A stretch of 63,466 nt of DNA, counting the filler, from Bigelowiella natans CCMP2755 (lineage: Eukaryota; Protista; Cercozoa), in assembly GCA_000320545.1 (NCBI GenBank). It is 9 parts of 9 records of this genome, joined end to end, with 100 filler letters (N's around TTAATTAATTAA, not from the genome) between each part and the next. Parts side by side here need not be neighbours in the genome. Positions count along the whole stretch, not along the records: positions 1 to 20,259 come from ADNK01003126.1; 8 more parts are not named here. One strand, 5' to 3'. A program made the position numbers and the translations under genes. Shown here in pieces: positions 5,423-13,080 of this stretch (its first letter is position 1; every line of letters starts with the position of its first letter). The notes under the pieces are model-generated. The model saw only the letters and a program-made list of their open reading frames with translations, ran no database searches and had not been told where the DNA came from.

Positions 5423-6172
5423 TTAAGCTGGGCTCCGTGAAAGAGGGCTTGGGGATGAAATTGGAGAAATGGGCATGAATTTCGGAGAGATTGGAATGTA
5501 AGAAGGACTGGTAGCGTAGCATGGGGAGGTTGGAATGTAGCGCGACTTATTTGAGCATTGGGGTGAGTGTGGGCTTGTCGCAGCATATTGTTTGGTTGGC
5601 TTGATAGATGGTTGAAACTCTGGTTGAATTATGTCTCCGATCTTGCGTTGAGCTGTGAATTCAGGTGAAGTGGGAACGAATTGAGGAGAAGTGGGAACAT
5701 AGGTGGGGCTATTTACATGGTTCGGAGAAGTCATGTAGTAGCTTGGGGATGTCGGAATGAAGGGGGATTTCGAGTACTTGGGCGAGGACAGAGTTGTTGT
5801 AGATGGTGATTCTTGCTTCACTGTCTCCTCATCAGAGATTCCATGGGTTGGAGAGAAGGCAGCCCTAGTCACCGAATAGGAGGGGCTCCGTAAATCAAAG
5901 CCAGGAATAGAGACTGGGAGATACTTTGATGTCTCCATACTTTTCAGTGAGGTGTGATCCCTTGTGCTTTTGTGTTTTTCCTCAACGTGATGGAAGCTCG
6001 CATTTTTCCTCTCAGCATTGGGGGTGGTTAATTTTGCTGCCCTGTACACCTTCTGCCCCCCGGCGCAGGTCTCACATCGAACAACCGTCGTGCTGTCCTT
6101 GTTAAGAATGCTGCATAGCAGGCAGTCCGTATAGATCTCGTTCTTTGTCTTTTCGTCTGTGATGGAATACAT
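5423..6172 (-). CDS. Protein with a RanBP2/NZF-like C4 zinc finger and degenerate RNA Pol II CTD-like heptads (possibly the last exon of a longer gene)
   Basis: 249-aa uninterrupted ORF. CLLCSILNKDSTTVVRCETC fits C-x2-C-x3-N-x8-C-x2-C. Repeats include FIPTSPS, YYMTSPN, YVPTSPQ, FVPTSPE, YAATSPH, YIPTSPC, YATSPS, YIPISPK and FMPISPI. No RPB1 core motifs nearby. Confidence 0.7.
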   Translation of the reverse strand: MYSITDEKTKNEIYTDCLLCSILNKDSTTVVRCETCAGGQKVYRAAKLTTPNAERKNASFHHVEEKHKSTRDHTSLKSMETSKYLPVSIPGFDLRSPSYSVTRAAFSPTHGISDEETVKQESPSTTTLSSPKYSKSPFIPTSPSYYMTSPNHVNSPTYVPTSPQFVPTSPEFTAQRKIGDIIQPEFQPSIKPTKQYAATSPHSPQCSNKSRYIPTSPCYATSPSYIPISPKFMPISPISSPSPLSRSPA

Positions 6173-7514: not shown

Positions 7515-8409
7515 CTGCTGAGCGGAGTACGAAAAACAATGCTTGTATTGTGATTTTTTTAAAGAGAAAAGGAAGAGTAAAATTGACGCTCGCCTGAGCG
7601 ATTCGGCTTTCCAAGGAAAGATCGTGATATATTAAGGAATTGGAGAATTCAATCCTCAGTGCTAGGATAATTCTGCCTGTCAAGCAAATGAATGATGCAC
7701 ATGAAAGACCTCTTACCCCAACCCTGCAAAAACACTGACTCGTGTGTAACCACCAAACCGCGTGTAGGTGCAAGGATTCAACCTGACCGGGAGCGAAGAA
7801 AGGGAGATATACTCATACATGCCCCTTGATCTGACGGAAGGATACGGTACGCGTAACGGTTTTGGCCTCACAGACGAAAAGCTTGCACTCGGTCGCTCGC
7901 TTGTTCGCCGTTTTGTCCGATTCAAGCCTGAGATCATCGAGGAGGCCGAGCACTTCCGTAAGCACAACCTCGCACAATTCAAGAAACCCCTCGCAGTGCA
8001 CATTCGTCAGACCGATAAAATCAGCCAAGCAAAGTCGAATTTCGAGCCGAAGGTGGAGTTTCGCCGCAAACTAGAGGCGATTATGAAGGAGCGCGGCTAC
8101 GATGGCTTTTTCCTCGCTTCGGATAGCCCTGAAATCAAGCGGTACCTGAAGAGCATGTTCGGCGACAGGTGCGTAGAATATCACTCGACTTTATCTCATT
8201 TAAACGAGGACGGCAACTACGGGGCTGTGCATAAGGACCATAGTATCCGAGGGTTCAAAAAGGCAAAGGACGTGATAATGGAGGTGCTCTTGATGGGCTC
8301 GTGCGATGCAATGATCTCAACGTACTCGTGCGTCGCGAACGGCGTGAGATGGACGGGGTCTGAAAGCCTCGCTGCAGACCACCACTATTTTCAAGATATG
8401 AGCTTCTAG
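7152..8409 (+). CDS. NodZ/FUT8-like (GT23-type) fucosyltransferase, 3 exons
   Basis: Exons start at 7152, 7330-7483 and 7768-8409, and are phase-compatible. Motifs: RGIFSVF, VDW..., NLWDDFFEQP, LAVHIRQTDK (cf. GVHIRRTDK), FFLASDSPE, EVLLMGSCDAMISTYSCV. Confidence 0.8.
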
Positions 8410-9132: not shown

Positions 9133-9720
9133 TTAATTCGAAATTATGTCTCGGATCATAGCCCCGCTGAATAAGGTCTCGAGGAGAATTCCGATGATGA
9201 CCAGAAACGTTATAGAAGAGCTTATCACCATCGATGTCATCCCGTTTGCTCGCACCATGGCAATGATTACAAACCTGCGAACACACACGCAAAGGCACAC
9301 ATACACAAGGCCAAGGCAAGACGATGAGAAGATGAGCAAAAAGAAGGAGGAGGAGATGGAGAAGAAGGAAAAGGCCGAAAGTCGTCAGATAACCAAACAG
9401 GATATGGGGGAGAGACGTGCGTGTGATGGCAGAGCCATGCGTTGCTTCAATATACTACGTGCGTGCACTTGATTGATTGTACTTATTACATTTGAATATA
9501 TCCTTGGAAGAGCATATAGTTATAGATGTTATGGTAGTTGTTGGCCATAAACATCGTCAGCACCTGTGGTGGTGTTGATATTAGCATTAAATGGAGGGGG
9601 TAGGGGGGGGGACGAGAAGGAAGGACAGTTGCATTGAAAGTCCTGCGAGTCGTTGGTAGAAGAGACTATGGGCAATGGAACTCATCGAATCAATGGTGCT
9701 GTATGTGAAAGTGAGATGTA

Positions 9721-9754
<34 letters not shown>

Positions 9755-10204
9755 ACCTTATTTGGGCTCTTGCTGTGCTTGATGTAGTGCCCGTACATGG
9801 CCATGTATACCAGCATGAGCAAGTTGTTGAAGAGTCCCAAAGCCATCACCCACCATGGGAGGTACACCCTCACCATGTGAAGCAATGCCAGCTGGGTGAT
9901 GTGGTCAGCGACGTGATCGAGAATGTCTCCGAGCTGTGTGCACTGGTTAAGGGCGCGCGCCAGCGGGCCATCAATGATATCCAGCGCGTAGGAGATGCCG
10001 ACGTATCTAGAGGCGTCCGAAGAACACATACAAACAAACACACACACACGTGCGCGCGCGCGCGCGCAAAATGATCTCGAAGTCAGCAAAACAGTTCTTC
10101 CAGCCTAATGAAAAGAGTGATTTGTTGGAAGTCTTTATTGTCCTGCTGCATCCCAGCTGCTGCTAGGATCGGTGATCGTCGGAGTAGGATGATAATGTTG
10201 CTCT

Positions 10205-10250
<46 letters not shown>

Positions 10251-10391
10251 CCCCCCCCCCCCCCTCCTTCCCTCTCCCTCTCCACCTTTCGTCCGACCAT
10301 AGGACACCGGCAACCAAAAGCGGGTATCTGACATGATCAAAGTACGGTTCTCAGCAAGAAATATACAACTACAACACAACAGCAGCAGCAG

Positions 10392-10422
<31 letters not shown>

Positions 10423-11015
10423 CTCTACCACTACCACTACTACTAATGCTGCTGTCAATATTACTACCTAGCCGCAGTTACGAGATTCGCCCAAGTCCAA
10501 ACCTCCTTGCAGAACTGAACTGCCAGTCTATCCTTCGGTTTCTTCTTCTCCTCCTTCGCGCTGGGGAGCGTCGTCGTCGTCGTCGTTGTTCCGCTACCCT
10601 TCTTCTCTTCTTCATCGCCCAACCATTGGATCACCTAGTAACGGAGGAGGAGGAGGAGGAGGAGGAGGAGGAGGAGGAGCGACGTTGAGTGTTCGTCAAC
10701 TGCATAACTCACTGGCAATATCTATTTTGTGTGGGTTGGTTGCTTTTGCTTTGTCCTCCCCCCCCCCCCCCTTCACACTGGGCGGGCCTACCTTCCCAGC
10801 GAAAGGAGATCGTGCACTTCGGTACTTATCCATGCGGTCGCTCAAGCCTACGTGGAAGAGGCCGAGGCATCGTTCGTCGGTCAGCCCGAGGTAGTTCTTG
10901 ACCCTTTCTACAGCCAGGGACTTATCAACACCACCGCTGCTCCAGTACCCAGCCTTTTGTTTGCACGCACGCAGCAGCACACGCACAGCAGCATAGGAAA
11001 GAAAGAAAGAGAGAG

Positions 11016-11048
<33 letters not shown>

Positions 11049-11514
11049 AAAGACTGTCATACCTCGGATGAATGTAACAATGAGACGCACACCATCGAAT
11101 GAACATCATGAGCAGGAGAGGAAGGGGGGCGTGGGGGGATGAATAGATGAGTACCACTCCGCTCGCATGGGCTACGAGGTGCATATTCTGCACAGCACAC
11201 GCAACAGCGCTGATATCCTCCCACTCCGGCATGAGCTTGCCCTTCGAGCTTGGGACCTAAGGAAGGAAGGAAGGAAGGAAGGTACACAACAGAAAAGCAT
11301 TGTAAGAAATTACCCTTGGGACTCGCGAGGAGGTAATTAGCTAATCATTATCATCATTCTCGTCTTTCTACCGACCCTCTTGAGGCAGATTGCAATCAAG
11401 TGCGAGACGTTTGCCTTCGCCTTTTTCTTCCTGGCGATCTTCTTCACTAGCCGCTCATAGTCGTCACTCCCTTTTTGCACCTATGCAGCGGCATTGCGGT
11501 ATCAATAATACACA

Positions 11515-11583
<69 letters not shown>

Positions 11584-11585
11584 AA

Positions 11586-11627
<42 letters not shown>

Positions 11628-12656
11628 TGAGAGGAGCATCACGCAGCCCCTTGACCCACGCCCCCTCAGAAAAAAACCCTCGTGTGATGAAGCATCACAT
11701 CGACTATACGGGTAATAATCCACAGGAAGATTTCAAAAGCATTGTTCGCTGATAAAGGGCGCGTGAGTGCATCGTGTCTCCTCATACACATCATCGAGTA
11801 AAAATCTCCTTTTCTGCTTGCTCGAGAATAGGACGGACTATACCATGCTCAACGCCTCCTCATTCATCATTGCCTGCAGCTGGCCAACAGCCCCCTTGAA
11901 GAAGATGCGGAACGATTACAGGCAGCCATTTAAACGACGACGACTTCGCGCAATATTTATCAACAAAGCGCATGCTTCGGAGCAAACGAATAAATATGAA
12001 AGTGAATGGAGCATCGTTTGGCCGGGACAGGCAGTAGTAATTTGATGCAATAGTTGTGTGGCTCTGGGCGAGATATTGTCTATCCCCGGTCAATCGGAGC
12101 ACGTTCCTTCTCTCCTCATGGCATTACAAGAGCAGCATAGTTGACAATACTTTCGTGGTTACACATACCTCCTTCAGCACCACGAATCTCCAGGGCTCTG
12201 TCTTTCCATGCGTCGGCGCCCAGTTTGCAGCCTCGATCATCTGGGAGATCACTTTGCTGATGGGCATACGTGGGAAGAAAATCGCTTCAAAGATTGACGT
12301 GTTTGCGTGGTGTGACGACGAAGTGCAGCTGCTTGCGCAGATGATGAGAATCGGTTAATTTGGTTGGTTGGGCGTGATGCAAACTAGTACTCAGGCACTT
12401 TAGAGCCGTTGTAGTCCTTCGGGAATATCGAACGCCGAGTCTTGATGAGATGGAAGGCATCGTTCGCATTGACCTTCTTGCCCTCCTCAGAGAACCCAGT
12501 CTGCTTCTTCCTTCTGGCTCCCGTTTTATCATCACCCTGCTGTTTTGTAGTCTTGCCGCCCTTAGCGAAGAAGATAGTGCCAAGTACTCCTGCTAGCATT
12601 GCAAGCGCTACTCCCTGAGGAACACAAGCTTCAGACTTCCGAACGAACGACAGCAT
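9133..12656 (-). CDS. N-terminally anchored nitroreductase (YdjA-like), apparently spliced in frame to a CDP-alcohol phosphatidyltransferase domain
   Basis: Nitroreductase exons: IKTRRSIFPKDY, MIEAANWAPTHGKTEPWRFVVL, SHLIAICLKR, MPEWEDISAVACAVQNMHLVAHASG, AGYWSSGG, CLGLFHVG. Transferase exons: EVWTWANLVTAAR and LDIIDGPLARALNQCTQLGDILDHVAD (DxxDGxxAR...GxxxDxxxD), plus TM-rich last exons to TAA at 9133. Each domain call is strong. The fusion and one internal exon near 11.5-11.9 kb are less certain. Confidence 0.8.
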
Positions 12657-13080
12657 TCATAACACACTATGAGAAGGGCGGAAATATCGATGCCAATGGC
12701 ACGCGCCAGCTTAAATCCACCCAAAGTTTTAAGCGGGTCGCTTTCTGAAAAGAACTGTGAGAAAGCAACAGAGCCAAAGCGTCCGAGGGAAAGCAACTGA
12801 CTTTCCCCATCACATGTGTGCGCTGCTGGAAAAAAGGGCAGCAGCATCGTTGCGCACACCGTTGATCTAACCCCAACTCGCTCCTCCTTTCTCTTCCCAA
12901 TCCATGAAAAATGAAACCATGAGTGCATTGCAACGGTGATCACGGTTGATGAAAGTTGCAGGGTAGGGCATGGAAGGAAAGGGGGAACGGGGATGACCAA
13001 AGCTTGCTCCATTGTGGGTTGAATTGTGTCAATGAGCGCAATGGTACATGTAGATCTAGTAATTATTCCCCGAATCCGAT

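Follow-up and report, generated by a model that had tools for sequence, protein, structure and literature searches.

Cytidine diphosphate (CDP)-alcohol phosphotransferases are known to occur with cytosolic partner domains, namely cytidylyltransferase or CBS-like domains. In this class the active site faces the cytosol and the N-terminus is cytosolic. The principle is illustrated by IPCT-DIPPS (4mnd) and AF2299 (4o6m), in which a soluble cytosolic domain lies N-terminal to the transmembrane transferase, the partner being either a CBS-like domain or the cytidylyltransferase from which the CDP-alcohol substrate comes. The subject of this report is a gene on the minus strand (12656..9133) of the window, i.e., the whole stretch of 63,466 nucleotides (filler included) of nuclear DNA from the chlorarachniophyte alga Bigelowiella natans CCMP2755 (GenBank assembly GCA_000320545.1) that was analysed; all coordinates refer to the numbering of this window. 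The gene appears to join a nitroreductase to a CDP-alcohol phosphotransferase, and the locus is probably a real, lineage-specific gene fusion in the nuclear genome that codes for one 482-residue membrane protein. The pairing is a new domain architecture, a variant of the known pattern of a cytosolic domain followed by a CDP-alcohol phosphotransferase. Both 4mnd and 4o6m were among the structural matches (Z about 9.6), but the partner in B. natans is a flavin oxidoreductase that is not known to be connected with the transferase reaction and, unlike these two proteins, the B. natans protein carries an extra N-terminal anchor helix.

The gene model was rebuilt by hand and consists of 11 exons separated by ten GT-AG introns, from the start codon ATG at 12656 to the stop codon TAA at 9133-9135. 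The piece 9133-12656 contains zero N bases, so it is without an assembly gap. The translation of 482 residues is identical to P0001 (eukprot jgi/Bigna1/145176/aug1.96_g19884, found by a word-index search to carry both PF00881 and PF01066), which was also the only 100%-identical protein returned when the catalytic exon was searched with phmmer against 1.84 billion representative proteins. The name element 'aug1' stands for an ab initio AUGUSTUS prediction, so the model reads the same DNA independently, by computation, and is not transcript-based. In order, the predicted protein would comprise an anchor (aa 14-31), a disordered tether, the nitroreductase domain (about aa 61-263), a disordered linker (about aa 264-291) and the transferase (aa 292-482). 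The features of the gene are as follows.

12391..12656, minus strand: exon 1, start ATG, hydrophobic helix, basic tether with predicted disorder, and first part of the nitroreductase domain including the RRS motif (R74, R75, S76)
12169..12256, minus strand: exon 2, nitroreductase core motif EAANWAPTHGKTEPWRF, residues invariant or nearly invariant
11844..11894, minus strand: exon 3, nitroreductase, GT-AG, in frame
11376..11480, minus strand: exon 4, nitroreductase, placed by the exon model and the homologue alignment
11155..11256, minus strand: exon 5, nitroreductase, MPEWE...VQNMHL, placed by the exon model and the homologue alignment
10792..10953, minus strand: exon 6, nitroreductase, last residue K258
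10635..10791, minus strand: intron 6, 157 nt, GT..AG, microsatellite (TCC)n
10468..10634, minus strand: exon 7, the bridge exon, 167 nt, nitroreductase C-terminus, linker, and N-terminal helix and motif of the transferase
10286..10327, minus strand: exon 8, a micro-exon of 42 nt coding for YPLLVAGVLWSDE+R, acceptor cag, donor gtggag
9757..10006, minus strand: exon 9, the catalytic exon, CDP-alcohol signature at nt 9901-9981, transmembrane helices TM2 to TM4
9490..9563, minus strand: exon 10, transferase, NNYxN motif
9133..9274, minus strand: exon 11, end of the transferase with TM5/6, stop TAA 9133-9135

A model of 10 exons and 468 aa, in which exon 7 is spliced straight to the catalytic exon, was rejected: it leaves the transferase one helix short, and both P0001 and the family alignment show the 42-nt micro-exon. 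This micro-exon supplies the remainder of TM1 and restores the family spacing between the N-L-R motif and DxxDG. For annotation it is a caution that an intact transferase depends on an exon of this size, which is easily missed by eye.

The evidence for the fusion is concentrated in exon 7. Exon 6 ends with the residues ...RSARSPFAGK at the donor AAG/GTAGGC, intron 6 holds a (GGA/TCC)12 microsatellite at 10643-10679 and has the 3' end ...GTTACTAG, and exon 7 translates as VIQWLGDEEEKKGSG(T)7LPSAKEEKKKPKDRLAVQFCKEVWTWANLVTAA+R, with neither a stop codon nor an in-frame ATG. The exon is open in one frame only; among 20,000 shuffles of its sequence, 6.3% were free of stop codons. An in-frame TAG is located at 10637-10635, immediately 5' of the exon, and read-through past its 3' end meets another TAG at 10467-10465. 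From the N-terminal side the exon encodes VIQWL (aa 259-263), a linker of about 28 residues (about aa 264-291, nt 10536-10619) that is rich in K, E and T and predicted to be disordered, and finally a juxtamembrane helix followed by ANLVTAAR (aa 292-314). The poly-Thr of the linker is encoded by an (ACG)6 run.

Homology enters the exon from both ends. On the nitroreductase side, K258 closes exon 6 and VIQWL opens exon 7, matching the homologue ending K-V-x-W, which is followed by 2-30 residues and a stop codon (nine homologues aligned over the whole domain, in two of which F or L replaces W). K258 is kept in all ten sequences of alignment A2 and in nearly all of 47, and the PDB homologue 3k6h aligned with the query as far as residue 265. 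The predicted local distance difference test (pLDDT) score remains near 90 until about residue 260, beyond which it drops to 41-53. On the transferase side, ANLVTAAR corresponds to the family N-terminal motif N-L-x5-R (consensus PNLIGYVR), with N308, L309 and R314 invariant or nearly invariant among 57 transferase relatives. The residues DRLAVQFCKEVW, just before ANLVTAAR, were modelled as the interfacial helix typical of the CDP-alcohol transferase class (helix 292-303). Because homology enters exon 7 from both sides, the two domains are joined within one exon, whatever splice choice is made at the boundary. One continuous open reading frame (ORF) thus spans the domain boundary inside exon 7, as a single polypeptide demands of the genomic sequence.

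The first-pass annotation had placed the exon 6 donor, the 157-nt intron and exon 7 at these same positions and had read exon 7 as an exon without stop or in-frame ATG that combines the nitroreductase end, a linker and the first transferase motif. The positions and the lack of a stop and of an in-frame ATG were reproduced, and the K-V-x-W endings and the invariance of N308, L309 and R314 bear out the reading of its contents. The same annotation had held that the transferase half lacks a start codon of its own. The fused protein indeed has no Met from residue 245 to residue 372, the latter lying beyond the catalytic motif, and the transferase cannot start by itself because no AUG occurs between these two residues.

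The repeats on both sides of the bridge exon, (TCC)12 upstream and (TAG)18 downstream, raise the question of an assembly chimera in which two unrelated loci were joined at microsatellites. Against such a chimera, exon 7 is an uninterrupted 167-nt unique sequence that is by itself homologous to both families, no N occurs in the piece, and frames and splice sites are consistent throughout; we regard a chimera as extremely improbable.

The nitroreductase half is intact. PF00881 was matched at aa 71-240 with 79.6 bits (cut-off 23.5) over profile positions 1-166 of 167, and exon 2 by itself matches the same family (E 2.6e-07). All invariant residues of the clade are retained, including R74, R75, S76, P103, H105, T108, W111, R112, G235 and G240. 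A hydrophobic N-terminal helix at aa 14-31 (nt 12564-12617) was recognized from hydropathy and from the AlphaFold 2 model, in which residues 32-60 have low pLDDT; the aligned homologues all have an N-terminal hydrophobic segment. The two halves were modelled separately (AlphaFold). In the nitroreductase model the pLDDT is above 90 for residues 61-260, and the predicted structure has the alpha+beta fold of nitroreductases that bind flavin mononucleotide (FMN), with YdjA-type neighbours 2i7h (Foldseek E 1e-13), 3k6h, 3bm1 and 7tmf (TM-score 0.80-0.84, normalised to the target). The domain, at about aa 61-263, is thus predicted to resemble the YdjA-like, FMN-type nitroreductases.

The YdjA-type enzymes of Escherichia coli (3bm1), Bacillus cereus (2i7h), Agrobacterium tumefaciens (3k6h) and Klebsiella pneumoniae (7tmf) share the FMN nitroreductase fold and the RRS and (E/Q)PW motifs. 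They gave the best PDB sequence matches (E about 1e-9), yet identity is just 20-24%, and the E. coli YdjA equivalog model (NCBIfam NF008088) was not reached (57.5 bits, cut-off 183). What sets the algal clade apart from these enzymes is its N-terminal membrane anchor together with an inserted stretch of about 20 residues; the B. natans gene is in addition fused to the transferase. Iodotyrosine deiodinase (IYD), a flavoenzyme with a non-nitro physiological substrate, was among the structural matches and also combines the nitroreductase fold with an N-terminal membrane anchor. In sequence it matches only weakly and over part of the length (E about 1e-5), it is not fused to a lipid enzyme, and no sign of its halotyrosine-binding elements was seen in the B. 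natans protein. A published B. natans plastid proteome (PMC3542566) lists, with no identifier in the text, a 'nitroreductase-like protein' for which signal and transit peptides are predicted. The N-terminus of the present protein has a basic stretch behind a hydrophobic segment and could be read as such a signal plus transit peptide.

The transferase half is likewise intact. PF01066 was matched at aa 330-417 with 50.1 bits (cut-off 22), and the catalytic exon by itself matches with E 2.2e-14 (54.6 bits). The full signature D337-x2-D340-G-P-x-A344-R345-x8-G354-D-x2-D358-H-x2-D362-H is present, and all its residues are invariant in 57 family members; D337, D340, G341, A344, R345, G354, D358 and D362 are likewise invariant in the clade. 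All 20 invariant family residues are kept over the five exons of this half, with correct phases, and the half also has the further invariants that mark its clade (DH..DH, GHYxKH and NNYxN). The model (pLDDT 91.7, predicted template modelling score 0.86) shows an interfacial helix and six membrane helices. In the numbering of the half, helices were modelled at 7-18, 21-39 (TM1), 42-61, 67-87, 94-114, 139-161 and 170-196, together with a short non-membrane helix at 126-132. The best 18 structural matches were all CDP-alcohol phosphotransferases (Z 13.9-7.8), headed by PgsA 7drk (Z 13.9, root-mean-square deviation 3.6 Å, 156 residues); unrelated helical proteins came next with Z below 7. Together these data predict that aa 292-482 form a complete small CDP-alcohol phosphotransferase that resembles PgsA and PIS.

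With PgsA (7drk), the PIP synthases (5d92, 6h53), PSS (7pow) and the eukaryotic PIS/CDIPT, the half has in common a fold of six helices plus a juxtamembrane helix (Z 13.9-10), as well as the DxxDGxxAR...G...D...D signature in full; its PIS-like features are the PNL(I/V)xxxR motif and ARALNQC. Identity to these enzymes is only 14-17%, and all NCBIfam equivalog scores were far under their cut-offs (PIPSynth 26 bits with cut-off 170, pgsA 24 with 109, ClsA 36 with 240). The B. natans transferase is one of about 60 members of a separate algal clade; between this clade and PIS the E-value jumps from about 1e-46 to about 1e-15. The names 'PIS' and 'PGP synthase' carried by clade members are automatic.

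Relatives of the two halves were found as separate sets of proteins; the lists of taxa are taken from named matches and represent a partial sample. In a full-length search, about 120 homologues with lengths of 265-843 aa were obtained that contain the nitroreductase only, apart from a few fusions with CPR-like diflavin or DUF2470 modules. They come from green algae (Chlamydomonas, Volvox, Coccomyxa, Pyramimonas, Tetraselmis), dinoflagellates, the haptophyte Tisochrysis and a Picozoa single-cell assembly. A profile search returned about 60 members of the transferase clade at E <=1e-46, all of which stand alone. They measure about 130-320 aa, in most cases 190-250, and derive from haptophytes (Prymnesium, Emiliania, Coccolithus), the Picozoa assembly just named and metagenomes; beyond them the next matches were PIS-like at E of about 1e-15. 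Among the database matches P0001 was the only protein with both domains, and no other B. natans protein of either family was found in the size ranges searched. The first-pass annotation had called the pairing unfamiliar and the families normally separate, with which this check of architectures agrees. The nitroreductase-transferase pairing looks specific to the B. natans lineage because all other homologues found have one family without the other.

Fusion partners of other kinds were seen in the same nitroreductase clade (P0238, P0222, P0263). In P0238 of the dinoflagellate Effrenium voratum, a full CPR-like diflavin reductase (Flavodoxin-FAD-NAD) precedes the nitroreductase, and P0263 combines DUF2470 with it. 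This suggests that the clade takes electrons from a diflavin partner. P0238 and P0263, which belong to the same clade as the B. natans half, show that it readily gains fusion partners; in them the anchor is replaced by an N-terminal module of redox or haem-related type, and none carries a lipid transferase.

The closest transferase relative, P0002 (191 aa), is encoded at 115-690 of L005 (Logan SRR25654129), at the edge of a 3-kb contig with only 114 nt upstream. It groups with the B. natans transferase half on the tree (approximate likelihood ratio test, SH-aLRT, 99), and both branches are long. The P0002 contig is AT-rich and gene-dense, with intergenic spacers of 15-90 nt and genes for GDPD and a 5'-3' exonuclease as neighbours; it looks like that of a giant virus or a nucleomorph. 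A metagenome-assembled genome (MAG) of a giant virus (L006:4613-5616, IMG/VR GVMAG-S-ERX555957-35) encodes a 189-aa CDP-alcohol transferase that is 29% identical to the query over 82 residues, directly followed by a cytidylyltransferase-like gene, i.e., a Kennedy-type pair. This gene pair hints that the transferase relatives may take a CDP-alcohol donor rather than CDP-diacylglycerol.

Several observations weigh against a fused product. The public model Bigna1 145176, being ab initio, is not independent transcript support. No MMETSP- or Logan-derived peptides of 110-843 aa from the fusion locus and no junction-spanning peptide fragments of 110-352 aa were found, and neither the exact 24-mer of the exon 6/7 junction nor degenerate peptide patterns of the bridge region had a match in the JGI metagenome contigs. 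All other members of both families are stand-alone, including the closest nitroreductases P0151, P0152 and P0270 (the last ending KVTWLSGQSEQKQ-stop) and, with its own ATG, the transferase P0002; in an MMETSP transcript the 62% identical nitroreductase meets its stop 13 residues past K-V-T-W. An out-of-frame ATG lies 4 nt 5' of the proposed start, at 12657-12660 on the minus strand (ATGAATGCTG...), where it opens an overlapping upstream ORF of nine codons. Retention of intron 6 leads to a stop codon at 10696-10698, present in the sequence as the first-pass annotation had stated, and is predicted to give a stand-alone nitroreductase with a 31-aa tail. This product is plausible as an enzyme: K-V is kept, and W is missing in two homologues too. 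Intron 6 retention could thus, judging from the sequence, add a stand-alone nitroreductase isoform.

On these grounds the fusion might be an artefact of gene modelling or no more than a minor isoform, with a main mRNA that ends within or retains intron 6 (stop at 10696) or stops just after exon 7 (TAG 10467-10465) so that a stand-alone nitroreductase is made, while the transferase exons are untranslated, decaying, or expressed from an undetected 5' exon. Both retention products soon reach stop codons, and an in-frame ATG in intron 8, about 24 nt upstream of exon 9, offers the transferase exons a start. A start at that ATG would, however, leave the product without TM1, without the juxtamembrane helix and without the invariant N-L-R motif; the sole AUG usable for the conserved N-terminal segment of the transferase is that of the nitroreductase. 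Moreover, the retention of 20 out of 20 invariant family residues over five exons with correct phases is not expected in untranslated DNA unless inactivation was very recent. An artefact or minor isoform is therefore considered unlikely. The fusion, by comparison, is supported at the DNA level because the frame is continuous in one exon, homology is present on either side, and both halves have all invariants and confident predicted folds.

A lineage-specific fusion in B. natans may have arisen from two adjacent genes by loss of their spacer along with the stop codon of the nitroreductase and the start codon of the transferase. By the positive-inside rule, the anchor would place the nitroreductase at the cytosolic face of the membrane, and the linker would enter TM1 from the active-site side of the transferase. 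The fusion would be topologically consistent, since the predicted position of the nitroreductase is cytosolic and the linker enters TM1 from that face. Both enzymes have parent folds that form obligate homodimers, which makes a homodimer of the fused protein structurally plausible.

What the joining means for metabolism was weighed separately. The first-pass annotation had proposed that the oxidoreductase is coupled to phospholipid head-group synthesis, possibly making or repairing an unusual lipid. The architecture on which that proposal was built stands at the DNA level; for the functional coupling no support was found, all other family members being separate proteins. In its general form such a proposal treats the fusion as real and as the mark of a coupled pathway (a Rosetta stone), with the flavoenzyme modifying the alcohol, the CDP-alcohol or the lipid product to give an unusual head group. 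Consistent with it, two catalytic modules would sit on a short flexible linker at the same membrane face, the nitroreductase homologues are also membrane-anchored, and both families occur in haptophytes as a group and in the Picozoa single-cell assembly. Against it, the fused instance is a single one (n=1), no transferase was seen in the named green algae that have the nitroreductase, no transferase lies near the closest nitroreductase relative (59% identity, on a compact picoeukaryote contig), the two Picozoa genes are on different contigs, and neither clade has a known substrate. A functional link is unproven because the two families co-occur only partly, and a coupled pathway is judged quite improbable. 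The fuller version, a true Rosetta stone that places the anchored algal YdjA-like nitroreductases and the PIS-like clade in lipid head-group metabolism, with channelling in a homodimer of seven transmembrane helices per subunit towards an unassigned polar lipid, is held to be very doubtful. Two independently active enzymes tethered in one membrane are the most economical reading and more likely than a channelled pathway, given that the families co-occur only in part. A literature search for the nitroreductase/CDP-alcohol transferase pairing or for the B. natans fusion gene returned nothing relevant.

The genome of B. natans is known for its dense introns. A long microsatellite or dinucleotide run occurs in seven of the ten introns of the fusion gene (introns 3 and 5-10), of the types (GCT)11, (TC)22, (CTA)18, (GGA)12, (GAAA)n and (AT)n/(CA)n. 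Inspection by eye showed a run of (CG)n(TG)n in intron 8 and a short one of (CTC)n in intron 10. The intron repeats and two neighbouring ORFs are located as follows.

9722-9754, 10207-10283, 10392-10445, 10643-10679, 10997-11053 and 11517-11625: intron repeats
5423-6172, minus strand: ORF of 249 aa rich in degenerate S-P-x-Y / P-T-S-P repeats that recall the C-terminal domain heptads of RNA polymerase II, no Pfam match
7768-8409, plus strand: ORF of 213 aa, convergent with the fusion gene at its 3' end, weak match, under the threshold, to the catalytic domain of alpha-1,6-fucosyltransferase (PF19745, E 0.0014)

Provided that the fused protein is produced, it would represent the first case found here of a CDP-alcohol phosphotransferase with a flavin oxidoreductase as its cytosolic partner, and it would provide a testable hypothesis for two algal enzyme clades without an assigned substrate, each with dozens of marine algal members. 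In the case in which the two halves act independently, the gene would be a clean case of the lineage-specific fusion of two membrane enzymes.

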